This document shows, one piece after another, positions 12,261 to 59,579 of a DNA stretch of 64,000 nucleotides (position 1 is its first letter; each line of letters begins with the position of its first letter). The translations under genes and the position numbers were made by a program. The notes below the pieces were generated by a model, which did not search any database, was not told the origin of the DNA, and was given only the letters and a program-made list of their open reading frames with translations. The DNA is from Malacoraja senta (taxonomy: Eukaryota): NCBI GenBank assembly GCA_038087875.1, contig JAXLNO010004294.1:1-64000 (forward strand), written 5' to 3'.

Positions 12261-12910
12261 TATGTGATGCGATGGCTGGTAGGTTTGTAGTAGATGTTGG
12301 TCAATAGTATGTTTCCTGTTATGGAGATGGTGAGATCTAGAAACGGTAGGGAGATGTCGGAGATGGTCCAATTGAATTGGAGTGCAGGATGGAAATTGGT
12401 GGTGAGGTTGATGAAGTCAGTGAGTGCTGCATGGGTGCAGGAAGTAGCACCAATGCAGTCGTCAATGTAGCGGAGGTAGAGTTCGGGGATCGGGCCAGTG
12501 TACCTCTGGAACAGTGATTGTTCGACGTTCCCTACAAAGAGGCAGGCACAGCCCTTTCACGCCTCTCCCACATCGTATTCCCATTCTTACAATTACAACT
12601 TGAAATCAAAGATGTTTTTGTTTCAAACCGCGTCGCTCCTGTTTGTTTTACACGAGTTAAAATCAGTTTAAACCAATATCTGTAGTTCCTTCTTCCACAA
12701 AGGAAACGGGGCATTGTGCAAATCAAAGCAGAAATTCCATCTGGATTGTACTGAAACAGTGGAGATTAAACCCTTTTAACGTCCGCATGAACCATGAACC
12801 AGATTGAATGTGTATTGCGCGCTTGTTTAAACTCAGTCGCCTCCGGTCAAGATTGAGATAAAGCCAAGACGCTTTTAGCCAGTAACGAATAAAATGAGTC
12901 ATTAACTTAC

Positions 12911-12962
12911 CTGCTTGAGCCCCTTGTACGCGGAAGATACTCAACAAGATGAACAGAATCAT
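12911..12962 (-). CDS. Leader exon of a second, probably class I-like gene (MILFILLSIFRVQGAQA)
   Basis: ATG at 12962, 17 codons + G, donor gtaagt. Same 52-nt length and phase as the gene 1 leader, with pattern M.LF.LL....V. Confidence 0.75.
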
Positions 12963-13036
12963 TTCACGCACAACCACTCGCATCAACAGCAGCAACTGAG
13001 CCAAACTTCACCAACATCAAAGCAGGATCTCATCAT

Positions 13037-27345: not shown

Positions 27346-28559
27346 AACCAAACTCAATTATGAATAAATGGTGATTCATTTCTAAGTCAGGATGGATCCC
27401 AGGTCAGGTTCCCACACATCTGCTGACCATGTTGTTCTTGTGGTTGAGATGTTGAGTTTGGAATGTTCTGATGGGCTAGACGACATGTATCTGCAGTGTG
27501 TTTTGTCGCTGGTTAAAGCTTGTGGTGCAGTGAATAAATGAGGAAATGAAATTGAGCATTGTGCAATCAACAGCAGACTCTCACTTTTGACTTTATAATG
27601 GAAGGAAGGTCACTAAAGTACCAGATCTTGATTATTGAGTACTCCACATCTTCCAGGCACCTAACATTGATTTCCCTTGATTGGGTTACTTGGATCTGCA
27701 TAAGGAATGGGAACAGCTTCAAACAATCTACTTGATTGTCGTTAATTAATTTTATTAATAATATCATAGAGTCATAGAGTGATACAGTTTGGAAACAGGT
27801 CCTTCGGCCCAACTCGCCCACACCGGCCAACAATGTCCCAGCTACACTGGTCCCACTTGCCTGCGATTGTCTAACTGTTTCTTAAAAGATAGATTAGTCC
27901 CAGCCTCAAGTCCCTCCTCTGGCAGCTTGTTCCATACACCTACCACCCTTTGTGTGAAAATGTTAACCCTCGGATTCCTATTAAATCTTTTTCCCCTTCA
28001 CCTTGAACCTATGTCCTCTGGTCCTCGATTCCCCTACTCTGGGCAAAGTCTCTGTGCATTGAATAACAGTTGATTGCGTTATCATTTCAATGTGTGCTGA
28101 TCTTTCAGGAAACTTTCCAAGTCAATCCATGTTCATCACACTCAGTCACTTTGAGGTAACATTGGCTGGGCAGGTTGTCCCTTATGGTAATCTTGATAAG
28201 GAATGTCTGGCCAAGTGTACAATGGCCAATTAATTCATGAAATCAGATTCAAGTTGGGGCCGTGGACCAGTGTCTGTTCCATGCAAGATTAATCCTGATA
28301 TTGTGAACTTTACACTAATACCAAATAATGTGGGCTAAACCCTGCCGCTCCAAACCAGTGCTGCCACCAAAGCAATAGGTTATAAGGTCAAGTTAAATCT
28401 CTACATTGTTTACAACTTTGGAGTTTTGATTTATGTAAAATGTTAGTGGAAATGTGGTAACTCTTGTGTATTGTCTCAATGTAATCTATATTTCCTGTAG
28501 TCTTGTACTAAAGTATGATTGTCCTTGTGTATTGTAAATGTTTGACAGAACTGTAGGGG

Positions 28560-29345
28560 CGTCAGGGCGGCGTCAGGGCTACGTCTTGTCACCCTGGTTA
28601 TTCTCACTCTACACAATTCAACTCGCATCCCAGTATAGTTCAGTTAAAATATATAAATACGCAGATGACACAACCATCATAGGTCTCATCTCTAACAACA
28701 ACAAAACAGAATACCGCACTCAAACAAACAAAGCAGTCACTTGGTGCACAGATAATAACCTCCTACTCAACACATCAAAAACACATGAACTTATCATTGA
28801 TCTCAGACGGAAGGCACAACCCAAGACCCCCCTACTCATCTCTGGCAAACCCATATCCACCACTGACTCATTCAAATTTCTTGGCACTCACATAAGCAAT
28901 AACCTCAAATGGAAAATCAATTCAGATCACATTTATAAAAAAGCCAACCAAAGACTTTTCTTTCTCCGTCAGCTCAAGAAGTTCAGAGTGAGGAAACATC
29001 TCCTAATCCGATTTTACACAGCCATCATCCAAAGCATGCTCACTTCATCAATAACAGTTTGGTACAGCAGTTTAGACATTCACCCGTAATAAACTGCAGC
29101 GCATTGTCAACAAAGCATCCAAAATCATCCAAAATCATCAGCACTTCCCTCCCATCAATAGATTCACTCAATCTCAAACGGTCCGTGTCAAGGGTGAAGA
29201 AAATCATTTCTGATCCCTCCCACCCAGCTCACCACATCTTCCACCTGCTGCCGTCAGGAAGGCGCTACAGCTCACTGCCCGCCAAAACATCACGATTTTA
29301 AAACAGTTTCTACCCATATGCAATTCGAACTCTGAACACTCTATG
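28560..29345 (+). mobile_element. Rex1/Babar-clade LINE, RT C-terminal fragment
   Basis: ORF 28538..29089 has QGYVLSPWLFSLYT...KYADDTTIIGLI...LNTSKTHELIIDLRR...KKANQRLFFLRQLKKF; 29059..29301 has PSHPAHHIFHLLPSGRRY. Confidence 0.92.
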
Positions 29346-41059: not shown

Positions 41060-41110
41060 TCACCTTGTCTTCACAGCTGGAATAGAAAGTTCAGGCAAAT
41101 CATACACCTC
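41060..41110 (-). CDS. Class I-like gene 1, probable exon 6 (cytoplasmic tail EVYDLPELSIPAVKTR*)
   Basis: Strong acceptor tttattttccag, phase 0 matching the TM donor, ends in TGA at 41062-41060. Short exon in unique sequence, so less certain. Confidence 0.65.
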   Translation of the reverse strand, partial: EVYDLPELSIPAVKTR

Positions 41111-41544
41111 CTGGAAAATAAATCTTCTTCGTAACTATTTTAAAGAGGGACCCAACATGGGAGGACTGCCGAGAACAAAGATAACAAAGAGGGTCCCGGG
41201 GTTGGGGGGGGAGGGGGCGCGGATAACACAGGTGAACCCAACATGGAGGGGCTGCCGAGAACAAAGAGGGACCATTGGGGACTGTAATGATTACTTTGTA
41301 ACTGTGTCGACACCCTATACATGGTGACTTGTGTATGTATACCTTGTGTATGTTATGCAAAGCAAAGAATTTCACTGTGACATGTCACATGTGATAATAA
41401 AGTATCAATCAATCAAATAGGCGACCTTTTATTCCAAAATGTGGCGCAATGTATGACTTTGGAATCACAGGGTAACTGCAGTGAAGACAGCATTTGAAAA
41501 ATTAATGGCTGAATGTAAAGTCATCAGTCAGCATTGATACAATA

Positions 41545-42030
41545 AAGAGCATAGAACAGTACAGCACAAGAACAGGCCCTTTGACCCACAATGTTTGTGC
41601 CGAACATGATGCCAAGACCAATTGTTATCTGCTTGCACATAATCCATATCCATCCATTCCCTGCATATACATGTGCCTATCTAAAAGTCTCTTAAATGCC
41701 ACTATCATATCTGCTTCCACCACCACCTCCAGCAGCACATTCCAGTCACTCACCACCCTTGGCGTAAAACACTTGTCCTGCACATCTTTTTTTAACTTTG
41801 CCACTCATTGTAAAGCAATACCTGCTCTTATTTGATATTTCCTTCCTGGGTAAAAAGTCTGATGGTCTACCCTATCTCTACTCCTCCCAGTTTGATATAT
41901 TACTGTCAGGTCTCCCCTCAATCCCCGACATTCCAGAGAAAACAATCCAACTGTCCAGTCTGTCCAACTTCTCCCTGTGGCTAATACCCCACTAATCCAG
42001 GCATCATTCCGGTAGACCTCCTCTGCATCC
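41545..42030 (+). mobile_element. CR1 3' remnant in the TM-cytoplasmic intron (CR1 sense on - strand)
   Basis: Starts with a CR1 tail complement (CATAGAACAGTACAGCACAAGAACAGGCCCTT) and matches other antisense CR1 3' ends in the window. Confidence 0.7.
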
Positions 42031-42090
42031 CAAAGGAAGCTGATTGTGCTTCATGGTCCTCTCCTGGTCTCTGCTGTTGTCAGCTGGTAC

Positions 42091-42224
42091 CTGTTCATTG
42101 AAAGGTTTTCTCTTTTTCCTCTTCTTCCAGCAACCAATTCCAAGGATGATCCCCAGGAGAATGAGAGGAACAATTACAGCTCCAGTCACGATCCTAATCT
42201 TCATATCTTCTTTCACTGCCCTCT
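42091..42224 (-). CDS. Class I-like gene 1, exon 5 (connecting peptide, transmembrane helix, basic stop-transfer)
   Basis: Acceptor caacag, phase 1 matches alpha3 donor. (E)RAVKEDMKIRIVTGAVIVPLILLGIILGIGCWKKRKKRKPFNEQ, then donor gtacca (phase 0). Within ORF 42004..42279. Confidence 0.85.
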
Positions 42225-42237
42225 CTGTTGGCATATA

Positions 42238-44215
42238 CAGTGGCTTGCAAAAGTATTCATACCCCTTGAACTTTTCCACATTTTGTCACGTTACAACCAC
42301 AAGCGTAAATGTATTTTATTGGGATTTTATGTGATAGACCAACATAAAGTGGCACATAATTGTGAAGTGGAAGGAAAATTATACATGGTTTTCAAATTTT
42401 TTTACAAATAAAAAACTGAAAAGTGTCGCGTGCGAAAATATTCAGCCCCCTTTACTCTGATACCCCTAAATAAAATCCAGTGCAACCAATTGCCTTCAGA
42501 AGTCACCTTATTAGTAAATAGAGTCCACTTGTGTGTAATCTCGGGACGACAGATGGCGCAATGGGCTAAGTGTTCGGCTGGCAACCGGAAGGTAGCCGGT
42601 TCGAATCCCGCTTGGAGTGCATACTGTCGTTGTGTCCTTGGGCAAGACACTTCACCCACCTTTGCCTGCGTGTGAATGTGTGTGAATGTGTGTGAGTGAT
42701 TGGTGGTGGTCGGAGGGGCGGTAGGCGCAGATTAGCAGCCACGCTTCCGTCAGTCTGCCCCAGGGCAGCTGTGGCTACAGAAGTAGCTCACCACCACCGA
42801 GTGTGACTGAGGAGTGAATGAATAATGCGATGTAAAGCGCCGAGTATTAGAAAGGCGCTATATAAATCCCATCCATTATTATTATTATTATTATTAATCT
42901 AATCTCAGTATAAATACAGCTGTTCTGTGAAGGCCTCAGAGGTTTGTTAGAGAACATTAGTGAACAAACAACATCATGAAGCCAAAGGAACACACCAGAC
43001 AGGTCAGGGATAAAGTTGTGGAGAAGTTTAAAACAGGGTTAGGTTATAAATAAATATCCCAAGCTTTGAACATCTCACGGAGCACTGTTCAATCCATCAT
43101 CCGAAAATGGAAAGAGTATGGCACAACTGCAAACCTACCAAGACATGGCCGTCCACCTAAACTGACAGGCCGGGCAAGGAGAGCATTGATCAGAGAAGCA
43201 GCCAAGAGGCCCATGGTAACTCTGGAGGAGCTGCAGAGATCCACAGCTCAGGTGGGAGAATCTGTCCACAGGAAAACTATTAGTCGTGCACTCCACAAAT
43301 CGGGCCTTTATGGAAGAGTGGCAAGAAGAAAGCCATTGTTGAAAAAAGCCCATAAGAAGTCCCGTTTGCAGTTTGCCACAAGCCATGTGGGGGACACAGC
43401 AAACATGTGGAGGAAGGTGCTCTGGTCAGATGAGACCAAAATTGAAGTTTTTGGCCTAAATGCAAAACGCTATGTGTGGCGGAAACCTAACACTGCACAT
43501 CACCCTGAACACACCATCCCCACTGTGAAACATGGTGGTGGCAGCATTATGCTGTGGGGATGCTTTTCTTCAGCAGGGACAGGGAAGCTGGTCAGAGTTG
43601 ATGGGGGAAGATGGATGGAGCCAAATACAGGGCAATCTTGGAAGAAAACCTGTTAGAGTCTGCAAAAGACTTGAGACCGGGGCGGAAGTTCACCTTCCAG
43701 CAGGACAACGACCCTAAACATACAGCCAGAGCTACAATGGAATGGTTTAGATCAAAGCGTATTCATGTGTTAGAATGGCCCAGTCAAAGTCCAGACCTAA
43801 ATCCAATTGAGAATCTCTGGCAAGACTTGAAAATTGCTGTTCACAGATGCTCTCCATCCAATCTGACTGAGCTTGAGCTATTTTGCAAAGAAGAATGGGC
43901 AAAAATTTCAGTCTCTAGATGTGCAAAGCTGGTAGAGATATACCCCAAAAGACTTGCAGCTGTAATTGCAGCAAAAGGTGGTTCTACAAAGTATTGACTC
44001 AGGGGGGCTGAATACTTTTGCACGCGACACTTTTCAGTTTTTTATTTGTAACAAAATTTGAAAACCATGTATCATTTTCCTTCCACTTCTCAATTATGCA
44101 CCACTTTGTGTTGGTCTATCACATAAAATCCCAATAAAATACATTTACGTTTGTGGTTGTAACGTGACAAAATGTGGAAAAGTTCAAGGGGTATGAAAAC
44201 TTTTGCAAGCCACTG
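42238..44215 (+). mobile_element. Tc1 (Passport-like) transposon, second copy, with nested SINE
   Basis: TA flanks at 42236-37 and 44216-17, same TIRs. ATG at about 42976, early TAA, +1 frameshift near 43605, ORFs 43066..43656 and 43611..43997; 34 residues between the D of QQD and the E of PIE. Confidence 0.97.
42542..42894 (+). mobile_element. tRNA-derived SINE with CORE-like segment, L2-type 3' end and (TTA)n tail; AFC-like
   Basis: A/B boxes (TGGCGCAATGG; GGTTCGAATCCC), GTTGTGTCCTTGGGCAAGACACTT, TGTAAAGCGC...AAAGGCGCTATATAAAT, TTA repeats. TSD taatct at 42536-41 and 42895-900; absent from the Tc1 copy at 21919. Confidence 0.9.
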
Positions 44216-45363
44216 TATAGTGCATTTTAAACATTTAGTGATCAATAACAACATTGTAATGATTTTATTATCTAAATTAAAGTAGCACTGTTCATATCTA
44301 ATTAAAAAGTAATAACGTTTTAGATTTAAGTATTTATACAGAGGATGGATGTGCTTAAAATGATCAATGAAAAATCATTAAGTTCATATTAGCATTGAGG
44401 TATTGAGATTTTATCTGCAGCATTTAATTAAGAATTTAAAGAATCAAGTACGTCAGAAATATATGACTATTTACAGTGTAGAGGTCAACAAGGCCATTTT
44501 CTTATGTTGATTGTTATTATAGCAAATAAAAGTGAACCCATTTATAGTTGATAAAACTTCAAAGGTTTTAATCTTTGCTGATATTTCAATGATATCTGAG
44601 TTTAATTTTCTCACATACACATGCTCTCTCTTTCTCTCTCTCTCCCCCTCACTGTCTCACACACATGAGCCCACACACACACACACACACATAGGCACAC
44701 ACAGACATTAACACTACTGTCTATTTGTACTGACCAGCAATCTTAACCATGTCAGCTTGGCCCTGGTGTGAAGATCTTTGCAGAGGTCTTGTCTGGAACA
44801 AATAAGTCAGCTACAGAACAGGTGCTGCTACTTCAGCCTGATAATATGGCACCACTATTGGTCTTTTGTGTAACTAGCTACTATCAGAAAATTAGCTAGA
44901 TGCCCAAGGAAGAAGATAAGAGACCTTGTCCAGGATCAGCCTATCTTGCTTCCACTGTTCCTACATTTGGATGGGTGAGTTAAGGGTGACATAAGAATAA
45001 TTTTGACCATAAGATATTGGAGCGGAATTATGCCTTTCAAGTCCATTGAGTCTACTCCACCATTCAGTCATAGCAGATCTATTTTTTACCGCTAAATCCC
45101 ATTCTCTAGCCTTCTCCCTGTAACCTTTGTCACCCGTACTCATCAAGAACCTATCAATCTCTGCTTGAAAAATATGCAATGACTTGACCCACACAGCTGT
45201 TTGTATCAATGAATTCCACAGATTCACCACCCTGTGACTAAAGAGATTCCTCCTCATCTCCATATTGAAGGTAGGTATTTTTATTGTGAGGCTGTGCTAG
45301 ACTCTCCCATTACTGAAAACTTCCTTTCCCATCAACTAACCAGGCATTTCATTATCTGGTAGG

Positions 45364-47156
45364 CAGGGCCGGATTTACATATAAGATGGACAAGCTTCAG
45401 TTTAGGGCCTGGAGATCTAGGAGGGGCTCGCAGAGCCGGATTTACCACTAGGCTTCATAGGCTGAAGCCTGGGGCCCTGAAATATAGGGGGCCTCCGGCC
45501 AAGGCAGGACACCAGCCGTTCAACTCTGGGCGGGGCGGCCCCCCTCTCTATCTCTATCTCCGTCTGTCACTCTCCGTGTCCGGGTCTCCGTTCTCCGCTC
45601 GCTCCTCATCCGCCAGCACGGCCGGCCGCCTTGCACATGCACACTGCTACGGCCAGCACGTCCTCCCCTGCACATGCGCACAACCACAGCCCGCACGTCA
45701 TCGGCCGCCCTGCGCATGCGCACTGCCACGGCAACTGGTCGGCGCTGGGCACTTTCTCCCTCGCTTTGAATTGTGGGAGATTTGGCCGCCATTGCTGCCT
45801 TGCCGCAACCGCTGAAAACTAACACAGAATCACTCCCTGACCCTGGATCAGGAGTATCTCCCTGGAGTAACTCTCGCTTCTGGTTTCCTGATCCTCCATA
45901 AATATTCTAAAAGGAATTTAAACTGGAGGTGGTAGAGGGCTGAACAATAACAGCCTATTGCATTTTATCTGTTTATTTATTGTGTATATATATGGTCTAT
46001 GGTATATAAACACACTGAACTTTTATCTCCTGTTCTGTATTATGTTCACATATTATGTTGTGCTGCAGCAAGCAAGAATTTCATTGTCCTATCTGGGACA
46101 CATGACAATAAAACTCTCTTGACTCTTGACTTGGACTTAAGCAAAAAAGGGTTCTTGGGGAAAAAAGAGGTACCTTAAATTTAGTTGCGTCTGGTTGGGT
46201 AACTATGGTAGGGTGAAGACTATTCCATGCTTTAATTGTGCGGGGGAACTCCATGGAGCAGCCAGCAACTCAGGATAGAAGAAATTGGGTGACGTTTCGG
46301 GTAGAAACACTTCTTTAGACTCCCTCTGGTTTTAGTGTCTTTAGCTTAATTTGAAGATACAGTGTGGAAACAGGCCCTTCAGCCCTCCGAGTCCACGCCG
46401 ACTATTGATCACCCGTACACTAGTTCTTTCCCACACATTAGCGAAGTAAGTCAAGAGTCAAGAGTTTATTCTCTCACGTCCCAGTTAGAACAATGAAATC
46501 CTTACTTGCAGCAGCACAACAGAATATGTAAACATAGTACTCTGTAAACAATGTTATAAACGAGAAAACAAAACGGTGTTTATTTATAGCTGTGGTGGAG
46601 ACAATCGCTGCTGCTACCCGACCCCCGGAGATTCGGAGGCTACAACCGCGGGTCTGGCGGACGGCAACACCGGAAGCCCGTGGGTCCCCTGGTGGGACAC
46701 CGCTTTTCGGGGCATCCGCAGCGGCGACTTCTCCCGCCCGAGTTGCGGGGTTGAAGAGCACCTGGAGGGGGGCTTTACATCACCGCCCCGCGCGGCTTGG
46801 AATGGCCGCCGGACTTTGCGAGCGCGCGCCGGGGCTCTAACACCAAGACGCGGTGCGCGACCCTGCATTAACCGGCGTGGCTTTAATGGCCGCGGGATAA
46901 TCACCATCGCCCGCCGGGGGCTTTGACTTTGACTCTGACATCGGGGGGGTGGGGGGGGGGGAGTGCAGTGGAGAGATACGTTTTTTTGCCTTCCATCACA
47001 GCGCTGTGATGGATGTATGTGTAAATTGTGTTGTGTCTCGGGTCTTCTTCGTTTTGTAATGTATGGCTGCAGAAACGACATTTCGTTTGGACCTCAACGG
47101 GGTCCAAATGACAAATTTGTCCAAAAGACAAATAAAATTGTATTGTAATTGTATTG

Positions 47157-47188
<32 letters not shown>

Positions 47189-48885
47189 CATAGTATATAT
47201 ACCCACACGCACACACACACAATTTCCCTCCTGGGATTAATAAAGTTCTATCGTATAGTATCGTGTGTGTAGGAAGGAACTGCAGATGCTGGTTTAAACT
47301 GAAGATAGACACACAAAGCTGGAGTAACTCAACAGGTCAGACAGAATCTCTGGACAAAAGGGAAATATTACGTTTAGGGTTGGTTCTGAAATAGGTTCCT
47401 GCACACCTTTGGAATGTGGAAGGAAACAAGAGCACCCGAAGAAAACCCATGCGATCAAAGTGAAAAGGAGCAAACTCCAAACAGACAACACCCATATTCA
47501 GGATCAATTCCAGGTCTCTGGCACTTTTAGGCAGCAACCTTATGGCCAATGTACAGCCCCATTGTCTTGAACTTAATTAAAACGCCAAGTGTAGCATTTC
47601 CTGCAGTCGCAATGGAAAGTGCCAGGAGAGGGGGTGGTTTGGGTGGGAAGGGACGAATTGACCAGGGAGTTACGGAGGGAGCGGTCTCTATGGAAAGCCA
47701 ACAGGGGAGGAGATGGGAAGATGTGGCCAGTTGTGGGATCCCATTGGTAGACAAAAAAGCTGTAGAAAATCAGCGGGTGAGGCAGCACCTGTGGAGCGAA
47801 GGAATAGACGATGTTTCGGGTCGAGACCCTTCTTCAGATTGATGTCGGGGGGGGGGGGGGAATGACATGAAAAATAAAGGAAGAGACGGAGACAGTAGGC
47901 TGTGGGAGAGCTGGGAATGGGAGGGGAAGGAGGGAGAAAGCAAGGACTACCTGAAATTAGAGAAGCCTATGTGCATAGCGCTGGGGTGTAAACTACCCAA
48001 GCAAATATGAGGTGCTGCCCCTCCAATATGCGGTGGGCCTCACTCTGGCCATGGAGGAGGCCCAGGACAGAAAGGTCAGATTCGGAATGGGAGGGGGAGT
48101 TGAAGTGCTGAGCCACCGGGAGATCAGGTTGGTTATTGCGAACTGAGTGGAGGTGTTGTGCGAAGCAATCGCCAAGCCTGCACTTGGTCTCACCGAGGTT
48201 GATCATACGCTGAATAATCCAACCACATTTTTTTTTGGAAGTGGAAAGAAATAATAGAAATTGCATTCATTGCAACGTGTAAAAAGAGTTAAGATACAGT
48301 ATTATAATTGTGCTGCATGTCATTGTGGTATATATCATGTCCTGATTGGTGAATATGTTTAGTTTGTGGCTTTATTTGAAGCAGAAATAATATGTGAATG
48401 CTTCATTGAGCATAATTCTGACTGGTCGTGTGAGCACATTATCGCACGTGTCATGCAAGCCATCTTAAATAACCACCTAAACTGTCATTTGGCAACTTAA
48501 AAAGCTACCAAGGTTGCCCGGCTGACAACAGAGAAAAAAAATTAAGTGAGAGCCCTGCAAGGTGTATAATATTTTTGACACTGTCATAGGCCTTTCTTAC
48601 ATATGCTGTCACAACGCACTGTAGTCTCTAAACAACACTTCAGTAATTTTCCTTGCCCTCCATTTCAGAATAATAGTGTTTTAAGCCAATAACTCGACAC
48701 TAGCAGTGGCAATAAATAAATAAATAAAGCCCAGCTTTCCAGCCCCTTATCTCATTGGCCACGCTCGGCTGCAAATCGGTGTCAATCTGGTGGACCATCT
48801 TCCTCTGGTCGTGGGGGTGGGGGATTGGGGGGGGGCCTCACAAGTGGAACAGCTTAGGGCCTCTCTTCATCTAAATCCGGCCCTG
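45364..48885. mobile_element. Non-autonomous hAT-type DNA transposon with nested insertions
   Basis: 14-bp TIR CAGGGCCGGATTTA / TAAATCCGGCCCTG; exact 8-bp TSD CTGGTAGG at 45356-63 and 48886-93; splits a CR1 fragment; no transposase ORF seen. Confidence 0.92.
47575..48200 (-). mobile_element. Rearranged Penelope-like fragments nested inside the hAT element
   Basis: ORF 47967..48266 contains GETKCRLGDCFAQHL...VAQHFNSPSHSESDLSVLGLL. Confidence 0.8.
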
Positions 48886-49339
48886 CTGGTAGGTTTCAAT
48901 GAGATTCCCACCTCATCCTTCTAAATCCCATGAGCACAGGCACAGAGACTTCAAACACTCCTCATACGTTAAATCAATCATCCCCAGGACATACATCCTC
49001 TCGACCCTCTCCAAAGCCAGCACATCCTTTCTAATATGGAGCCCAAAACTGCTCACAATATTCCAAATGTGTCTTCACCAGTGCCCGATAAATCCTCAGC
49101 ATTATATCATTGTTTTTATATTCTACGCCCCCCGAAATGAATGCTGGCATTGCATTTGCCTTACTTACCACTGACTCAATCTGCAAATGAACTATTTGGG
49201 AATCCTGCACTAGTACTCCCACTTTGTAGCTCAGGTTTCTCAATTCTCTCCCCATTTAGAAAATAGTCTATGTCTTTATTCCGACTGCCAAAATGTAAAA
49301 CCAGACACTTGCTACACTGTATTCCATTTGGCTCTGCTT

Positions 49340-49985
49340 TGCCCACTCGGTGGAACTGCTGCCTTACAGCGCCAGAGACCCGGTTCAATTCTGACTACGG
49401 GTCCCGTCTGTACAGAGTTTTGTACCTTCTCCCCGGGACTTGCGTGGGTTTTGCCTGGATCTCCGGTTTCCTCACTCAGTCCAAAGACATACAGGTTTGT
49501 AGGTTAATTGGCTTGGTATTATTGTAAATTGTCCCCTAATAAGTAAGATAATGTAAGTGTGCAGGGATCGCTGGTTGACGCAGACTCGGTGGGCTGAAGG
49601 GCCGGTTTCTGCGCTGTATCTCTTAAACTAAAACCACATTCCATTGACTATCAATAATTATGAGCAATTAGATAACCACAAATTAATAATGGGTGGCACA
49701 GTGGCGTAGCGGTAGAGCTGCTGCCTTACTGCACCAGAGACCTGGGTTTGATCCTGACTACAGGTGCTGTCTGCAAGGACATTGTATGTTCTCCCTGTGA
49801 CTGCGTGGGTTTCCTCCCACACTACAAAGACATACAGGTTTGTAGGTTACTTGGCTTAGGTAAAATTGTAAATTGTCCGTACTGTGTAGGTTAGTGTAAA
49901 TGTATGGGTTGATCACTATTCAGCGAGGACTCAGTGAGCTGAGGGGCCTGTATCTGCAGCATATCTCTAAAGCCTAAAGTCTAAA
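49340..49985 (+). mobile_element. Two tandem HE1-type V-SINEs just downstream of the alpha3 exon
   Basis: Copies at about 49340-49635 and 49691-49985. Confidence 0.85.
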
Positions 49986-50079
49986 TCCACAGCTTAGTTA
50001 AGAGTGTGAGTTGAGACTGTTATCTCAGTCCAGGAGGTTTATGGTCTCAAGTGATCAGCCTCATTGACTTGCCACTTAC

Positions 50080-50352
50080 CCTGTGGAACATTGACTCCCT
50101 GCAGCAGAGTTGCATGTTCGATGTAACAGGAGAATTTTGCCACATCTTCTCTATTCAGTTGAATTGTATTCTTCAGCTGGTAAGTCCCATCCCAATTGGG
50201 CAACAGATCACTGGATTCAGACTCATGGACCCCCTCACCATCTCTCAGCCACGTTACATCGATGGCCCGTGGCTAGAAGCCTGTGACAAGGCAGGAGAGT
50301 CTCAGTGATTGCGACCCATCACGTTTAATCCCAATAAACACCTCAGGGGTTT
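50080..50352 (-). pseudogene. Class I-like gene 1, exon 4 (alpha3, Ig C1-set) with in-frame TAG
   Basis: Acceptor ttgcag, donor gtaagt, 273 nt: (E)TPEVFIGIKRDGSQSLRLSCLVTGF*PRAIDVTWLRDGEGVHESESSDLLPNWDGTYQLKNTIQLNREDVAKFSCYIEHATLLQGVNVPQ. Stop at 50273-50275. Confidence 0.95.
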
Positions 50353-51166
50353 CTGCAAGTGTAAGAAGAGTCAGAATCAGTGAAGACATGAACAAAAGCC
50401 TTCAATTGTAAGATCACTGCAACTCACCACTTTCCCAATCAGAGTTTTTTCTCTGGCTGAACTAAGTTTTCAGCCTAGACCCAAAATGCTGGAATAACTC
50501 AGCAGGTCAGGCAGCATTCTGGAGAGAAGGAATGCCCAGAGATGCTATCTGACCCACTGAGTTACACCAACATCTTCTATCTTCAGTGTAAACCATCATC
50601 TGCAGTTCTATCTTGCACAAAGTTTACAGCCTTTTCTCTTTTCATTTTGCATTTCTGGCAAAACAACAAAACATTTAGCTTTGATATCACTGACATGCTC
50701 CTTATCTTAGCTCCAGACTTTAACTGACAGCACAGATGAAAGGGGAATGCAGGCCCAATGGAGGAGTATAACTCACCATTGGGATTGATACTGTAGACAT
50801 GATTGCTTCTACCTGTTCATGAATCTCTGCTGAATAATAACACTAAATATTCCAAGAGGGAATGGGAGGAAGAAGTTCTTCAAATAGAGAACTGTTGGAA
50901 ATTGAATGTCACCATCCCAAGGAGTAATAGAGGCAAATAGAGAATCTGATTGGGTTTCTGATCAGTTCAGCAACAGACCCTTCAGGCCACAAGGTCGGTG
51001 CTAAACATAAGACCAAGATACATATTCCTCCATTTCCTGAATATCTATATGACTGTGGATAAAGGACACTGGTACAATATTTATCTTTCACTTGCACTTC
51101 CTACCCACTGGTTCCATCTAAGAGGCACGTTGCCAGACAATTTACTGATACCCACGTTGTAGAACA

Positions 51167-51457
51167 GGGTGGCGAAGCGGTCGAGCTACTGCCTTACAGC
51201 GCCAGAGACCTGGGTTTGTTACTAACTACGGGTGCTTGTCTTTACAGAGTTTGTACGTTCTCCCTGTGACCTGCGTGGGTTTTATCCGAGATCTTCGGTT
51301 TCCCCTCACACTCGAAAGACGTACAAATTTGTAGGTTAATTGGATTGGTATAAATGCAAATTGTCCGTAGTGTGTGTAGGATAGTGTTAGTGTGCGGGCA
51401 TGGCTGCTCGGTGCGGTCTCGGTGGGTTTCCGCGCTGTATCTCTAAACTAAACTAAA
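51167..51457 (+). mobile_element. HE1-type V-SINE in the alpha2-alpha3 intron
   Basis: Full-length copy. Confidence 0.88.
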
Positions 51458-51556
51458 TAATTACTCAAGTGACAGCCTGAAGTGCATGATATTTCCCACC
51501 TGATCTATCCAGAGGATATCCTCTGGCCCATCAGTCAGAGTGCCTACGTCGTGTAC

Positions 51557-51831
51557 CTCTCCTCTGTAGTGCTTCTTGTCCACACTCCAGATATATCCGC
51601 AGCCACTTCACACAGTCCTTCTCCAGGAGATCTTTAAAATACTTGTCATGAAGGTGTTGAAGTTCCACCGATCTGCTAGCATCTGGAAATCTGGACGTAG
51701 TGCAATCCAGCGCATTCTGTCCTTGTCAAAAGCACAGGCATCCTCCCCATCATAACCCAGTCTGACAAACCCATCAGTGGAATTGTCACTGTCCACTTCA
51801 CAGCCGCAGAAACCCTGCACAAAGCAAACAG
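51557..51831 (-). pseudogene. Class I-like gene 1, exon 3 (alpha2 domain) with 1-bp deletion
   Basis: Acceptor ccccag, donor gtacac, 275 nt (not a multiple of 3; class I alpha2 exons are typically 276 nt). Reads VCFVQGFCGCEVDSDNSTDGFVRLGYDGEDACAFDKDRMRWIALRPDFQMLADRWNFNTFM, then after a one-base shift near 51641-51647 KYFKDLLEKDCVKWLRIYLECGQEALQRR. Confidence 0.92.
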
Positions 51832-52879
51832 CTGGGGCTGAGGTAGGGGTGGAGGATTTGTGTTGGGGAGAGTGGATGGAAGGGAGAGGCAATTTACAAA
51901 TCAGTTCTCAGCATGGTACAAACAGGCATAACAGAACACAACATGGAGCTGTACAGCACAGGAGCAGGTTTAGCTCAGAGATACAGCGCGGAAACAGGCC
52001 CTTCGGCCCACCGAGTCCGCACCGACCAGTGGTCCCCGCATATTAACACTATCCTACACAGACTACTTTTCTTTTCCAGCTTTCTCCACTCTACCCCATC
52101 ACTCTAAATGGTCCTGGTCTCATATGTTTTCTGTCCATTTTTCCACAGCATGCTGCCTGACTCGTTGAGTTCCTCCTGTTTGTTTTAAATTCAGATTGGC
52201 AGCATCTGCAGTTTGCTGTGACTCCATCTTAGCACAATGGATGATCAATGTGGATTCAGTGAGCAGAAGGGCCGGTTTCCATGATGTGTGACTCAATGAC
52301 CCTTGGTCTATATACTGAGGGCATGGACTAACCTCAAGTGTTATGGGGGGGAGCTTTACTGTTGCGGATGTAACACTAAAGGAGTTCTGCTGTGTCAGAA
52401 GGGTGGAACTCAGATTCTGCACTGTCGTACATAAAGAACAGAGGAAGAAGTGCATTGTCAGATGGGCAATGCTACAGAGCCAACAGGTCAGTCTGAAGGT
52501 TAAGGCAATGCAGATGGGAAGTACATCAAGGCTGTTGCACTGTGTGGGATTGCTACACCCTCTGAGGATTGTTGCCAATATTGAGGGGATGCTGGATTAA
52601 CACAATATTATTACTGAGGGAATACCTCATAGTCACCATCAACCAGCTTAAATCAAGATCCCATCTCTAGATGATCAGGCTATAAATAAACTAATGGTTT
52701 CTTCCTCATTCCAGCCCAACAAAACAGATGATCCAATCCATCCACTTATTACTGGTGTTGAATATCAAATGCTTAACCCATAAAGAGACTATCACCAGCC
52801 AACTGTTATGACTGTGTGTTCAGCAGTTAGGACACATTAAATATAGACGATGGGCCGTGTCTCTATCAAAATGTGATGG

Positions 52880-53400
52880 AGTAAATGTCTGAAACAGCAT
52901 CAATGGTGCTGAAGTGAAAAAGGTTGAGAGTTTCTGGTTCCCCTACTGCCTCAGGAGACTAAGGAAATGCGGCATCTCCAATGACTCTTACAAACTTCTA
53001 CAAATGTGCCATAGAAAGCATACTGACAGGTTGCATCACAACTTAGTTTGGAAAGAGTTCTGCCCAAGACCGCTGGAAATGGCAGAGAGGTGGAGATGTA
53101 GCACAGTCGATCACACAAACATGATTCCCCACCAGTGAATCCATCTGTATTTCAACTGGTTCAGGAAAGCAGACAACATAATCAAAGATTTGTCCCGTTC
53201 TGGTCACTCCTTCTTCCTGCAGAAGGTACGTAAGCATTAAAGCGTGCACCACCAGACTCAGTAACTGTTTCCTCCCCTATGTTATCAGGTTTCTGAACAG
53301 TCCTCCCTTATGCTAGGGTTCACCTCAACCCCATTGTAGACACTGGACTTTGTCTCTGGCACTGGTACATTACAATGCTGAGAACTACATTCTGCACTCT
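52880..53400 (+). mobile_element. Rex1/Babar LINE 3' fragment in the alpha1-alpha2 intron
   Basis: YCLRRLRKCGIS... then LTNFYKCAIESILTGCIT-like sequence in a shifted frame. Confidence 0.75.
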
Positions 53401-53575
53401 TTGCTCTACCTATTGTACGAGTTTGGTTTGATTGTATTTATGAATAGTTTTCTTTGATGTGATTGACTAACGCAAAAAAAGTGTATCAGAGAATCATGTG
53501 ACAGCAACAAAACTATAACAAAATCCATCTGTGTCATCACTGGGTCTCTACCCCAGGTCCGCTCACGACACTTAC

Positions 53576-53836
53576 TCGAGATACCATGTTGCTGTTGGTA
53601 GACTATCTCAGCATTTCCTCTGACAATCCCATGAAAACCTGCAACTGTGATGGCCATTGAATCCCAGTGATCCTGCGGGAAAGACTGGGCCATCCATCGC
53701 TGTCTGGGAACAGCCCGCTCTAGTGTGCTGTCAAAATATGCTATCTGGACGTCATCCAGCATTGCTACCATACTGTACTCAGGCAGCTCATTCAATCCAT
53801 GGTTCAACAGGTAGTAAGATGCAAGATGGTGTAAAT
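53576..53836 (-). CDS. Class I-like gene 1, exon 2 (alpha1 domain)
   Basis: Acceptor ttgcag, donor gtaagt, 261 nt, open frame: (D)LHHLASYYLLNHGLNELPEYSMVAMLDDVQIAYFDSTLERAVPRQRWMAQSFPQDHWDSMAITVAGFHGIVRGNAEIVYQQQHGIS. Overlaps ORF 53406..53807. Confidence 0.93.
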
Positions 53837-54029
53837 CTGCAATGCATAAACAAAAATAAGTATGATTGTATCATTCACTGAAAATAACTAAGTTATTAAT
53901 GCTAAAACTGATAACAATACAATAACTTTGAATAAGGGAGTCACAAGGACCTGCAGATGCAAGTGCTGGATGAACTCAGTGGGGCAGGCAGCATCAATGA
54001 TCAGGTGACAATTTGGGTCAGGAGCCTTT

Positions 54030-54330
54030 AGTTTAGTTTTTAGCTTAGAGATACAGCATGGAAACAGGCCCTTCGTGCGAGTCCACACTGACCAGCAACC
54101 CCCACACAATAACACTATCCTACACACACTAGGGACAATTTACATTCTAGACCAAGCCAATTAACCTACAAACCTATACGTCTTTGGAATGTGGGAAGAA
54201 TCCGAACATCTCGGGAAAAACCCACACGGTAATGGGGAGAATGGACAAACTCCGTACAGACAGCATCCATAATCAGGATCCAACCTGGGTCTATGGTGCT
54301 GTAATCGAGTAAGTCTACCGCTGCACCACT
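54030..54330 (-). mobile_element. HE1-type V-SINE in class I intron 1
   Basis: Antisense full-length copy. Confidence 0.85.
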
Positions 54331-55404
54331 GAGCCTTCTTCAAGAGTTGGCATGATGGGCTCTGATACCTACTCCACCAATTATGGTCGAGGTATTGAAT
54401 GATCCTACTGGATTGTTTCCCATCTTCAAAGATCTATTATTGTCTATCATGTCGATAGGTTCTACTAGTTACAATATTCCAAAATTTGAAGAATATTTTA
54501 TTATATTAAGAAACTGGACAATGTCAAGGAGACTTTATAGAATCATAGAGAGGTAAAGTCAAAGAGTCATACAGCAGGGAATCAGGGCCTATGGCTCAAC
54601 TTGCCACACCAACCAACATGCCTCATCTACACTGCCTGTATTTCATCAGTACATAAGTTCTAGGAGAATAATTAGGCCATTCAGCCCATCGGCCATTCAA
54701 TCATGGCTGAGCTATCTCTCCCTATCAACCACATTCTCCTGCCTGCACCCCATAACCCTTGAAACCCATACTGATCAAGAATCTGTTAATCTCCACCTGA
54801 GAAATATCCATTGATGTGGGCTCTACAGCTGACTGAGGCCCATATCCTTATAAGCCTATCCTATCCATGTACCTGATTAAATGATTCTTAAATGTCGTGA
54901 TAGTACGCGCCTGAACTACCTTCTCCGGCAGTTCATTCAGTACACCCACCACCCTTTGTGTAACAATGCTATGCCTCAGGTTCCTATTAAATCATTCCCC
55001 CCTCATCTTAAACTTATGTCCACTGGGTACAGCACATAAAAGGCCCTTTAGCCCACCAAGTTCGTGGTGACCATCAAACACCTATTTATACCTGTGGTAC
55101 GCTAACCCTTTTAATATTTGCCAATCTCCCATTAACACCTCCCTCATCCCCTCCACCAATTCTAATACATATGCATGACCAATTCACACTGGCCAATTTA
55201 CCTTTCAGCCCGGCATTTTGGGGACGTGCGGGGAAACTGGAATAACCATAGCAAACACACGTTTGCAGGGGGAAAAAAAAGCCAGGTTGTAAGAGATCAG
55301 GATTGAGTCCAGGTCCTCATAGGCAGCTGCAACACAGCTCATAGAGATGGGGGGGGGGGGGGGGTGGTGGTGGAGACTGAGATAAACAGGGCCTAAATTG
55401 AAAC

Positions 55405-55930
55405 TCGACACAAAATACTGGAGTAACTCAGTGGGTCAGGCAGCATCTCCGGAGAAAAGGAAAAGGTGACGTTTTGTGTCGAGACCCTTCTTCAGAATGA
55501 GAGTCAGGGGACAGAGAACCGAGAGATATGACAAAGTACAATGAAATATATGCACCCCCGACTCTGTCTGATGCAGTGTCTTGACCTGAAACTCCACCTA
55601 TTCCTTTTCTCCAGCGATGCTGCCTGACTTGCTGAGTTACTCCAGCCTTTTGTATCTATCTTCGGTGTAAACCAGCATCTGCATCAGCAGTCAGAAGAAG
55701 GGTCTCGACCCGAAACGTCACCCATACCTTCTCTCTAGGGATGCTGCCTGTGCCGCTGAGTTACTCCAGCTTTATTGTCTATCTTTGGTTTAAATCAGCT
55801 TCTGCAGTTCCTTCTTACACATCTGCACTTCCTTCCTACACTTGTGTCAACTGAAACATCACCTAACCATGTTCTCCAGACATACTGCCTGACCTGCTGA
55901 ATTACTCCAGTATTTTATGTGTATTAACCA
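55405..55930. repeat. Cluster of four Penelope-derived terminal repeats (one -, three +) in class I intron 1
   Basis: Repeated GATGCTGCCTG...GAGTTACTCCAGC...TGTCTATC units; core TCAGAAGAAGGGTCTCGACCCGAAACGTC near 55691-55719. Confidence 0.8.
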
Positions 55931-57444
55931 GCATGTGCAGTTTCTTGTTTCCACATGCATAAGCAGTATTTGTTCTGTGATAAAGATTACATGCAGCACA
56001 CCAGACAGTGTCAAAGTTCATGTGTTTAAGTGAAGTGAGAAGGGGCCCCGAGGGCAGAGTTAGAAGTGTCTGTTTCAGTGTTACCAGGAGAAACATAAGA
56101 CGGCTAAGAGTGGAATACAGTAACGATAAAATCCATGTGGCTTCGCAAAACACTCCACAGCCAAGGATTTTTGTTTTATATGTTATTATTTCAACATGGC
56201 CATCACCATTATATGGTTTCGGCCCGAAACGTTGCCTATTTCCTTCGCTCCATAGATGCTGCTGCACCCGCTGAGTTTCTCCAGCATTTTTGTGTACCTT
56301 CGATTTTCCAGCATCTGCAGTTCCTTCTTTAACACCATTATATTTACTTTCATTTGATAACAATGGGATGAAACTTTCAGGACGAGTAGGTTTGTAATCT
56401 CCAAGCCTTGACGAATGTCAGAATAGTTAGAAAGGTACCATTGTGTGGGAAGAAATTGCTCATCAGATTCCCATTCAATCTTTCCCCCCTCAATTTAAAC
56501 CTATGTCCTCTGGTTCTCGATTCTGTAATCTGTTGAATATGTTGCCCACTTGAAAATTTCCAGATTGAGATTGATAGATTTTTGTTCATTAAGGGTGTAA
56601 TGGGCTGGAGTTCGGCCACAATGTCTGTGCCGAACATGATGTCAAGTTCAACTAAACTCTTCATGCTTGTAGATGATTCATATCCCTCAATTCCCTGCAT
56701 ATCCACGTGCCTATCCTCAAGCTTCTTAAATCTCATTATCGTCTTCTGGGGAAGTGGTGATGGGGTAATGGATAGGGTCTGCAGGACAGGAAGCATGCAA
56801 CAAACAACAAGATGGCAACAACATTAACACAACATTGATTGGTCATTTAATGCAGGCTGAATTTTACCATCATGTGGGTGTCTAACACCAGCTGAGGAAA
56901 TCTTGGAGAGGTGGAACACCTACTAATGCAGAAGTCACTTCTTTATTGAAAGTGCACATCACCTGAATTCTGTCTGAGGCATTAGTGCAAGGACAGATTG
57001 GACAAACATGGATTGTTTTCTCTTGTATACTGGAGGTTGAAGGGAGACCTGATGAAAGTGCACAACATGGTGAGAGGCACAGACAGAGTGGACAGCCAGA
57101 ACCTTTTTCCCAGGGTGGAAATGTTGAAGACCAGAGAACATCACTTTAAGGTTGGAGAAGCAATGTTCAAAGGAGATGAGCGGAGCAAGTTGTTTTATGT
57201 GGAGGGTGGTGGACATCTGTAACGCGCTGCCAGTGGTGGTTGTGGTGATGGTGGCAGATATAACAGTTACATTTCAGAGGCTTTTAGATAGGTACATAGA
57301 TAGGCAGGGAATGGCCGGATACAGATCACATACAGGTAGAGGAGATTAGTTTAGTTTGTTCGGCACAGACATTGTGGGCCGAAGGTAGACAAAATGCTGA
57401 GGTAACAGCGGGTCAGGCAGCATCTCTGGAGAAAAGGAACGGGT

Positions 57445-57472
57445 GACGTTTCGGGTCGAGACCCTTCTTCAG
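57445..57472 (-). ncRNA. Hammerhead-ribozyme-like core in a Penelope-derived terminal repeat (best-preserved copy)
   Basis: Minus strand CTGAAGA-A-GGGT(CTCG)ACCC-GAAA-CGTC: conserved CUGANGA and GAAA boxes, stem II, GUC triplet. Stem I pairing is weak. Confidence 0.6.
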
Positions 57473-57775
57473 ACTGAAGGACTGAAGGACCTGCTCCTGT
57501 GCTGTATTGTACTATGTTCTATGTTCATTATTTACATGTATTCAGTTCTTCTGTTCAATGGATTGCCAAGGTAACCATAGTATATATAACTTCCCACAGG
57601 AGCCTTTACAACTAAGGAAAGACCGTTACCCAAAATTATTAATACATTCAATTCAATCATTCAATTAATACATCCAAGACAATGAACCCAGGGCAAACAC
57701 AGGCACTGTGCAACAGTAAATATAATCAGTTTTGTTGTTTCCTCAAAGTTCACAGGTTGAAGCAGTATTGCTTAC

Positions 57776-57827
57776 CAGAGGAGACAGTGGCCACACCGTA
57801 AGTGTTCAGTAAGGTAAAAAGAAGCAT
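57776..57827 (-). CDS. Class I-like gene 1, exon 1 (signal peptide MLLFTLLNTYGVATVSS)
   Basis: ATG at 57827, 17 codons + G, then donor gtaagc (phase 1). Hydrophobic leader; promoter module directly upstream. Confidence 0.85.
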
Positions 57828-57848
57828 GTTTAACAGCCGCCCACAGCA

Positions 57849-58009
57849 CTATTTAACCAGCAGAGTAAATGCAGCAACAGTAACATAATCTCTTGTACGT
57901 TTTTAACAGAACTCTGGTGTGAAGGTAATTATTGGTCCATGTATACACAAACCTGATAACCAGATCCAATGGGAATGAGACCACTTGTTCTCGTCACTAA
58001 TTACCAGTG
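57849..58009 (-). promoter_or_regulatory. SXY-type MHC promoter of gene 1 (X1-like, X2/CRE half-site TGACG, Y box ATTGG, second CCAAT, TATA-like)
   Basis: Minus strand CACTGGTAATTAG-TGACG (57996-57992), 21 nt, then ATTGG (57970-57966). Second CCAAT at 57931-57935; TTAAATAG at 57849-57856. Confidence 0.75.
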
Positions 58010-59579
58010 AATACAGTTTACGGATTGGGTTTTATGGTAGGGATTGTATTGGTGTTTTAAGGACAACAATTACAAAATCATATTTCACATAGCATCTTAC
58101 AGCCGAATAGATGTTTCTCAAAGTATAATGATTTTACAATTCAGAATGCAGTCAATTCCACAAACTGCAGTGTTAGATAAACCAGATAGTCTACTTTACT
58201 GTGTAGGAAGGAACTGCAGATGCTTGTTTTACTGTAGGCAGATGCAAAAAGCTGGAGTAACTCAGCGGGTCAGGCAGCATTTCTGGGGAAAAGGAATAGG
58301 TGACATTTCGGGAAGGGTCTCAACACAAATCGTCACCTTTTCCTTTTTCCCAGAAGTGCTGCCTGACCTGCTGAGTTACTCCATCTTTTTATAAGCATAG
58401 AAAATAGGTGCATGAGGAGGCCCTTCGGCCCTTCGAGCCAGCACTGCCATTCATGGTGATCATGGCTGATCGTCCCCAATCAATGCCTGCCTTCTCCCCG
58501 TATCCCTTGATTCCACCAGCCTCTAGAGCTCTATCTAACATTTTTGTGTCTGTCTTTAGTCCACTTTACTGTTATTGCTTAAGTAATAAAAATTGGACAA
58601 TGCATGTGTAATAATTTCCCAGCCCTTATTTGAGGTAATACCATGCGTCTTTTTTTTCAGCTGGGAGGAGAGACATGAGCTCAGTTTAAAGTTGTGTCTA
58701 GGTGTAAATGTGCAGCTCAGTCTCAACATCAGTGCAGAAATCTCTCATTGAGCCTTCTGTTAATACATGGCCCTTTACACCATGTCCCACTCACCTGAAA
58801 ACTATGCTCTCCATTACTTTATATTTACACCCTGTGGAAAAGATTTTGACTCTCTATCCCATCTATGCCTCTCATAGTTTTATATACTTTTATCAACCTC
58901 CAGCATTCTAGCGATTACAATCTAAGTCTGTCCAACCTCTCCTTCCAGCTAATATCTAATCTGTGCATCATTCTGGCAAACCACCTCTGCACAAATTCCA
59001 TGCTTCCAAATTCATCCTGCATTGGGGCAACCAGAAATGCCGATAATATTCTAAAAGTGGCCTATCTGAAGTTCTATTCTCCGACCAGTCTGACTGTCCC
59101 CCTGATTAAAAATTATCTATGTATGCTTCGTTCACACCTACTCCTGGCTAATAATGATCTATTCTACATTTTCCTTGAACTACATCTCATTTGATGTCAT
59201 TCTTTCATACCTTACACTTCCTTATCTCCATGTCTCCCTTTCCTCTTCAGCCTGAAGGGACTCAACCAGAAATGTCAGCCATTCCTTCTATCCAGAGATG
59301 CTGCCTGTCCCACTGAGTTACTCCAGCATTTTGTGTCTATCTTTGAAGTTCCATAAAGCAGCATATGACTTCCTGACTCTTATACTCAATGCTATGAATA
59401 GTGTCTTTACCACTCTGGCTTTCAATTGATTGAAGGCGGAAAGGAGCCAAAGAATTATATAGCAAAAAATCTCTGTGGTGGGACTGGAACAGAATGTTTT
59501 TTTTTAAAGCAAAAAAATCAAGGATATTGTTCAATAAAAAAGTAAAATATTTCTTTTCCCGGTATGGCGGGACTAACAT

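Follow-up and report, generated by a model that had tools for sequence, protein, structure and literature searches.

A class I gene of the major histocompatibility complex (MHC) lies on the minus strand between 41 and 58 kb of contig JAXLNO010004294.1 of the skate Malacoraja senta, within the 64,000-nucleotide stretch of DNA that we analysed as a whole (hereafter the window). We consider it highly probable that this gene belongs to an ancient, single-copy non-classical class I lineage, a tandem sister of the elasmobranch UGA lineage, whose members would hold a hydrophobic non-peptide ligand, and that the copy seen here was recently disabled. We call the lineage X; its RefSeq name is 'MR1-like'.

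The gene and its two lesions

Six-frame translation and base-by-base reading of the borders gave five coding exons spanning 42004-57827, with canonical AG/GT borders and phase 1 at exon junctions 1-4 (Table 1). The original prediction had described a complete class I gene of six exons with matching phases: the Pfam matches, the splice borders and the phases bear out a class I gene, while the exon count and the completeness are wrong. One domain occupies each exon, cysteine pairs are present in alpha2 (GCGCE...KDCVKW) and alpha3 (LSCLV...FSCYIEH), and the platform (PF00129) and C1-set (PF07654) domains that make up a class I heavy chain are both there. On the window fragments, Pfam MHC_I matched alpha1 at E 1.7e-5 (24.9 bits) and the two frame pieces of alpha2 at 2.3e-8 (34.3 bits) and 3.4e-3 (17.4 bits), and C1-set matched alpha3 at 6.9e-9 (36.4 bits); intact orthologues score 81-92 bits for MHC_I, with a cut-off of 28.3, and 54-62 bits for C1-set, with a cut-off of 21. 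The best PDB match of the alpha1 exon was 9ch4, a UGA structure (E 1.2e-21), which alpha3 also matched (E 6.9e-15). A tblastn search with all exon peptides found no other copy of the gene in the window.

The reading frame is interrupted at two places, by the two lesions to which the original prediction had alluded. Alignment to the 282-bp alpha2 exon of the little skate (Leucoraja erinacea) left a single gap, where one A of an AA pair at 51646/51645 is missing from the Asn codon of FMNKYFK; at a length of 281, the exon shifts frame and meets TGA about 15 codons on. In alpha3, an in-frame TAG stands at 50275-50273 where little skate has TAC, the Tyr of GFYP, which is invariant across lineage X orthologues. 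With this deletion and this TAG, no uninterrupted frame runs from ATG to stop in the window copy; that of little skate is intact over 366 codons including the stop, once its overlooked leader exon is added. The remainder of the gene is intact, including the ATG, all splice sites and the four cysteines of its domains. Of the 102 positions invariant in the lineage 99 are kept, the departures being F7S and the two lesions; other members of the lineage depart at 0-6. Inactivation appears to have been very recent, since apart from the lesions the sequence is preserved no less well than in working orthologues. We infer that the lesions are biological and that the copy is a very young pseudogene or null allele, with assembly errors less likely, and a Tc1/mariner insertion, which ends 13 nt upstream of the acceptor side of exon 5, may add to the inactivation.

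Could the gene still be functional in this species, its lesions being assembly or consensus errors or belonging to one null haplotype with the other allele intact? We regard this as unlikely. Everything that is intact in the copy would fit such a reading, as would the better conservation of exons (94.5-96.2% nucleotide identity to little skate, alpha1 at 96.2%) than of introns (90-94%, counting substitutions only) and the position of the deletion in a two-base run of A; yet the reading has to accommodate two independent lesions that differ in kind, including a C-to-G substitution atypical of long-read errors, a transposon 13 nt from an acceptor, and protein searches that returned no lineage X protein for A. 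radiata or Rhinoraja longicauda, though UGA proteins are annotated in both. We therefore continue with a recently disabled copy as the preferred reading; lineage X may have been lost or pseudogenised more widely in skates.

Two further candidates at the ends of the gene were rejected. The sixth exon, placed at about 41118-41068, requires a GT donor after the transmembrane segment that reads GG in little skate, and transmembrane segment and tail form a single exon in sawfish and zebra shark. In little skate the read-through tail, which differs by a 9-bp in-frame indel, remains in frame and reaches the same stop, and comparison with little skate, sawfish and zebra shark gave no support for coding sequence below 42004 toward 41060. 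As a leader start, an upstream ATG at 57885 leads into a TAA and has no phase-1 GT donor; it is the downstream leader that has a perfect donor and is conserved to sawfish. The peptide of that downstream leader is identical in little skate (positions 100-150 of locus L001) and agrees at 16 of 17 residues in sawfish (12581-12631 of locus L004), where the leader exon lies 5.4 kb upstream of the alpha1 exon.

The rejected ATG opens an 18-codon, signal-peptide-like open reading frame (ORF; 57829-57885, minus strand; MLLLLHLLCWLNSAVGGC) that ends 2 bases before the real ATG. The 3' part of this frame, in-frame stop included, is kept in little skate, where L001 ends short of the ATG in question; the frame could be a regulatory upstream ORF or the relic of an older leader. 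The promoter and leader region as a whole (57700-58060) is 80% identical over 340 bp between this skate and sawfish, which suggests conserved regulatory elements.

Orthologues, synteny and tree placement

Among 1.8 billion representative proteins searched with phmmer, the alpha1 exon matched little skate XP_055486430.1 at 94% amino-acid identity (93% by tblastn). Because the little skate locus is collinear with the window through introns and flanks, in blocks mostly 84-94% identical in nucleotides, the window is the orthologous locus of another skate. Searching with the full-length little skate protein returned, for at least 15 sharks and rays, a single close protein in each species, at 54-72% identity: among rays Pristis (sawfish), Mobula (two mantas), and Hypanus and Hemitrygon (two stingrays), and among sharks Pristiophorus, Heptranchias, Scyliorhinus (two species), Stegostoma, Hemiscyllium, Chiloscyllium (two species), Mustelus, Cetorhinus and Carcharodon. 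Beyond lineage X the next class I matches reach only 33-36%. Between rays and sharks, identity in alpha1, alpha2 and alpha3 is 68.5, 71.9 and 58.3% in lineage X, 61, 64 and 60% in UGA, and 40, 36 and 53% in UFA; the platform of lineage X is better conserved than its alpha3.

The true leader exon, with its 17 conserved codons at a distance of 5-10 kb upstream of alpha1, is absent from the RefSeq models of lineage X. In little skate the model is labelled 'partial' and continues for 12 codons into intron 3; in sawfish it begins at an unrelated upstream exon. Little skate also carries a partial duplicate, from intron 2 to alpha3 only (L002, JAMYXN010000412.1, 10226-14271), which shares 82-87% identity with the intact little skate gene and 87-89% with the window, and whose RefSeq model has a junk N-terminus. 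Since this alpha2-alpha3 duplicate exists, more than one lineage X copy per skate genome is plausible.

A UGA leader exon lies 29 kb downstream of the lineage X gene on the same strand, and the rest of that UGA gene extends beyond the start of the window. This leader is distinct in sequence from the UGA leaders of A. radiata, L. erinacea and Rhinoraja longicauda, which places the window in a different skate. As no other UGA exon was found in the window, the first intron of UGA must exceed 12.9 kb. The same order on one strand, lineage X and then UGA, is seen in the window (42004 and 12983), on one contig of little skate, in sawfish (lineage X at 13.956-13.978 Mb, UGA from 14.020 Mb, 42 kb apart) and in zebra shark (6.711-6.726 Mb and from 6.753 Mb, 28 kb apart). 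Because skates, sawfish and zebra shark have this order in common, the tandem pair predates the split between sharks and rays. In the supplement of Verissimo et al. (2023), the entry for the sawfish orthologue, LOC127585976, gives only 'MHC-Ib' and places it after TRIM39-like genes and before three UGA-type genes.

For tree placement we used 83 ectodomains and 270 columns in a maximum-likelihood analysis (LG+C20 with posterior mean site frequencies, PMSF), reading the window with X at its two breaks. In this tree, which holds neither labelled UBA, UCA, UDA and UEA sequences nor tetrapod MR1 and CD1, lineage X forms a clade at 100/100 (starred); within it the rays make up a starred subclade (99/95), and the sharks, grouped with weak support (84/54), make up the remainder. 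Lineage X and UGA are sisters at 95/85 (starred), and UFA stands apart at 100/100 (starred). The gene is not of the classical type, and alignment did not restore the classical anchors.

We give little room to the view that the gene is a divergent form of UGA, already a named lineage, or of UFA, and would bring nothing new at the level of lineage. UGA does supply the best PDB match and the tandem neighbour, and the helix motifs AGFHG..KG and N.YFK.LLE.DC are common to both, but per-domain identity is 37-43% between lineage X and UGA and 21-37% between lineage X and UFA, against ray-shark values of 58-72% within lineage X and 60-64% within UGA. Lineage X is sister to the clade of 9ch4 and not inside it, the 8gm8-like UFA sequences form a separate clade, and the lineage X and UGA clades each hold sharks and rays, on starred stems of 0.5 and 0.44. 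Both genes occur next to each other in the same species, with F7/H59/R146 in lineage X versus Y7/Y59/K146 in UGA, and the lineage X tail is without the YxxI motif of UGA. Searches seeded with members likewise found UGA and UFA in sharks and rays; A. radiata has an annotated UFA protein alongside its UGA proteins.

Still less credible is the homology implied by the RefSeq name, that of an MR1 or CD1 homologue in cartilaginous fish. When a shark member is compared with the PDB, MR1 chains rank next after UGA, at 160-206 bits versus 142 for shark classical class I, and there are weak matches to PF16497; these, however, reach only 22.7-32.8 bits, below the 35-bit cut-off, where PF00129 gives 81-92 bits. 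The position of MR1 Lys43, which we take to be the ligand-binding residue that forms a Schiff base with vitamin-B-derived ligands, is Ala in lineage X by the alignment around PRQRW (LERAVPRQRW in the window and its orthologues). Furthermore, in a tree composed without MR1 and CD1 sequences, lineage X groups with UGA and not outside the elasmobranch class I genes.

Membership of a described elasmobranch lineage between UBA and UFA, or of a new one, had been left undecided by the original prediction. The gene is not classical and is neither UFA nor UGA, and by the criteria that could be applied it is neither UDA nor UEA. UDA is said to keep eight of nine invariant peptide-terminus residues, and UEA has reportedly been described from sharks only. 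Lineage X keeps two of eight anchors, unlike UDA as so described, and unlike UEA it has one gene per species and is present in skates, sawfish, stingrays and mantas. UDA is a single-copy gene and UEA a multicopy family (PMC10751288), and the single-copy class Ib genes named in a 2025 review are UDA, UFA and UGA alone (PMC12562908). We found no lineage name for X in the literature consulted, and its protein records carry only automatic RefSeq names. The window gene is the skate orthologue of a conserved, catalogued and apparently unnamed tandem sister of UGA.

Anchors, groove and predicted ligand

Classical class I molecules anchor peptide termini with Y7, Y59, Y/R84, T143, K146, W147, Y159 and Y171 (HLA numbering). 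A MAFFT alignment that included classical-type fish sequences reproduced the residues previously read by eye at these positions in the window (S7, H59, Q84, L143, R146, W147, L159, Y171), and the lineage X consensus is F7, H59, Q/R84, L143, R146, W147, L159 and Y171. Two of the eight classical anchors are therefore kept and six replaced, so that neither the window gene nor its lineage has the anchor set of UAA-type class I. The N86 glycan site is absent, as had been noted: alpha1 does not close with an N-x-S/T motif. All members of the lineage instead have an N-x-T sequon in alpha2 (DN.T.GF).

The strikingly hydrophobic alpha1 helix reported for the window proved to be a feature of the whole lineage, and the most hydrophobic among the groups compared. 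Judged by sequence-based hydropathy, the grand average (GRAVY) of this helix is +0.37 in lineage X, -0.31 in UGA, -0.53 in UFA and -0.58 in other class I molecules; the mean for the alpha2 helix is -0.30, -0.92, +0.21 and -1.09, respectively. The missing peptide-terminus anchors and the unusually hydrophobic groove helices uphold the call of a non-classical gene.

An AlphaFold2 model of the little skate orthologue (predicted local distance difference test score, pLDDT, 87.9) had 9ch4 as its best Foldseek match, with Z 27.9, 39% identity and a root-mean-square deviation of 2.1 over 267 residues. The PDB titles of 9ch4 and 8gm8 are 'shark nonclassical MHC class I, UGA' and 'shark nonclassical MHC class I, UFA'; we reached 8gm8 by modelling the basking shark UFA orthologue, the nurse shark UFA sequence being A0ABF7PPZ1. 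Because the nearest solved relative is UGA (9ch4), reported as CD1-like and lipid-binding (PMC12562908), a non-peptide hydrophobic ligand is a reasonable inference for lineage X. Taken together, the conserved platform, the lack of peptide anchors and the greasy helix suggest, with moderate confidence, a monomorphic class Ib molecule with a fixed non-peptide ligand.

An intact gene would encode a type I membrane heavy chain with a leader, an alpha1/alpha2 platform with its alpha2 disulfide, a C1-set alpha3, a transmembrane segment and a short basic tail, its alpha1 helix lined with small and hydrophobic residues. Such a molecule, monomorphic and presumably paired with beta2-microglobulin, would display one conserved hydrophobic non-peptide ligand, probably lipid-like; alternatively, it may be recognised as such by innate-like T or natural killer (NK) receptors. 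Because its tail has no tyrosine sorting motif, loading would probably take place in the secretory pathway or at the surface and not in endosomes. In this skate the copy appears to have been switched off by the 1-bp deletion in alpha2 and the TAG in alpha3, to which the Tc1 element may add.

Several observations weigh against this picture. No tyrosine sorting motif was found in the lineage X tails of skate, sawfish and sharks, where ray UGA tails carry Y-x-x-I (YQNI/YQTI/YENI); a tail without the Y-x-x-hydrophobic motif does not indicate endosomal sampling, and CD1-like sampling by lineage X is accordingly not supported by its sequence. The report that UFA and UGA bind CD1d-type lipids is second-hand, given as a personal communication (PMC12562908). 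Between the window and little skate, where synonymous divergence (dS) is 0.07, the ratio of non-synonymous to synonymous substitution (dN/dS) is 0.66 overall and 0.48 in alpha1 and alpha2, which is not strongly purifying over a short branch. Polarised by outgroups, 12 replacements are derived in the window and 8 in little skate, and the window changes F2L, F7S, F92C and L168R fall at well-conserved sites of the groove region; they could reflect relaxation preceding the lesions, or noise. Finally, the 1-bp deletion, lying in an AA pair, could be an assembly error.

A wider and more tentative reading, to which we give somewhat less than even credence, is that lineage X is an unnamed fourth 'greasy-groove' class Ib lineage, born with UGA in a tandem duplication before sharks and rays split and single-copy since, whose platform is more conserved than those of UGA and UFA, implying one fixed non-peptide ligand or receptor over about 300 million years, and which skates may now be losing (broken here, a partial duplicate in little skate, no protein returned by the searches for two other skates).

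The MHC is not known from any animal group older than sharks and rays. UFA and UGA have recently been solved and reported as CD1-like, and UGA can now be paired with a conserved sister lineage in tandem, whose alpha1 helix is more hydrophobic still and whose platform evolves more slowly; this makes lineage X a concrete candidate for a third ancient non-peptide-presenting molecule. The window copy offers a natural case of loss of function in a skate; taken alone, it is of modest significance, since the gene was already represented in RefSeq for many species and this copy has recently been disabled.

Other features of the window and comparison with known systems

The Tc1/mariner element in intron 4 has near-identical inverted ends of about 50 nt and a TA duplication, and its frameshifted transposase is split into two ORFs. 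A second Tc1/mariner fragment and a long interspersed nuclear element (LINE)-type fragment lie between the UGA leader exon and the lineage X gene (Table 1).

Table 1. Lineage X exons and neighbouring features, in window coordinates
Feature	Coordinates	Strand	Details
UGA leader exon	12911..12983	-	ATG; donor G/GTAAGT; MRVVVREMILFILLSIFRVQGAQA; found by tblastn with skate UGA proteins
Second Tc1/mariner transposase fragment	22642-23154	-	Pfam match
LINE-type reverse-transcriptase fragment	28538-29089	+	RVT_1 and ALKBH8_N-like match
Exon 5, connecting peptide, transmembrane segment and whole cytoplasmic tail	42004..42224	-	stop TGA at 42006-42004
Tc1/mariner element in intron 4	42238..44215	+	1,978 bp; Pfam HTH_Tnp_Tc3_2, DDE_3; site empty in little skate
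Tc1/mariner transposase match	43066-43997		Pfam match; inside 42238-44215
Exon 4, alpha3 (C1-set) domain	50080..50352	-	273 bp; C1-set
Exon 3, alpha2 domain	51557..51837	-	281 bp; both frame pieces match MHC_I
Exon 2, alpha1 domain	53576..53836	-	261 bp; phase 1 to 1; Pfam MHC_I
Exon 1, leader	57776..57827	-	17 codons + 1 base; ATG at 57827; donor G/GTAAGC
5' flank/promoter region	57828..58009	-	flank and leader align 91% to little skate (225 bp) and 80% to sawfish (340 bp)

Among known systems, UGA (9ch4; skate XP_032898133.1 and XP_055486429.1) is closest to lineage X, being its sister clade and tandem neighbour with the same fold, and it shares W147, L159 and Y171, the alpha1-helix motif AGFHG..(K/R)G and the alpha2-helix motif N(K/R)YFK.LLE.DC. 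It differs in having Y7/Y59/F143/K146 where lineage X has F7/H59/L143/R146, in an identity of 37-43% per domain, in a less hydrophobic alpha1 helix (-0.31 versus +0.37) and in the YxxI of its tail, which lineage X is without; there are three UGA genes in sawfish, whereas lineage X is single-copy, with a platform more conserved between rays and sharks.

UFA (8gm8; nurse shark A0ABF7PPZ1) is likewise an elasmobranch-wide class Ib molecule encoded on the MHC chromosome, with its anchors lost and a hydrophobic binding region, and has in common with lineage X the alpha1 stretch LPE.S..MLDD.QI.Y.DS.L...PRQ.WMA. In contrast, it forms a separate starred clade at 21-37% identity, its alpha2 domain is radically different, its hydrophobic helix is that of alpha2 (+0.21) and not alpha1, and its platform evolves fast (36-40% ray-shark identity).

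Classical class I (UAA; 6lup) and teleost U molecules agree with lineage X in their exon-domain layout, phase-1 introns, alpha2 and alpha3 disulfides, C1-set alpha3, W147 and Y171. Lineage X departs from them, at 31-33% identity, in having six of eight anchors replaced and an alpha2 N-x-T sequon in place of the N86 glycan site.

MR1 and CD1, finally, resemble lineage X in the logic of a monomorphic class Ib molecule: the platform is better conserved than alpha3, the groove is hydrophobic and peptide anchors are lacking. MR1 chains are the best non-shark sequence matches of lineage X. Unlike them, lineage X has no equivalent of Lys43, a CD1-type Pfam score below threshold and no endosomal sorting motif; orthology to mammalian MR1 or CD1 seems unlikely.

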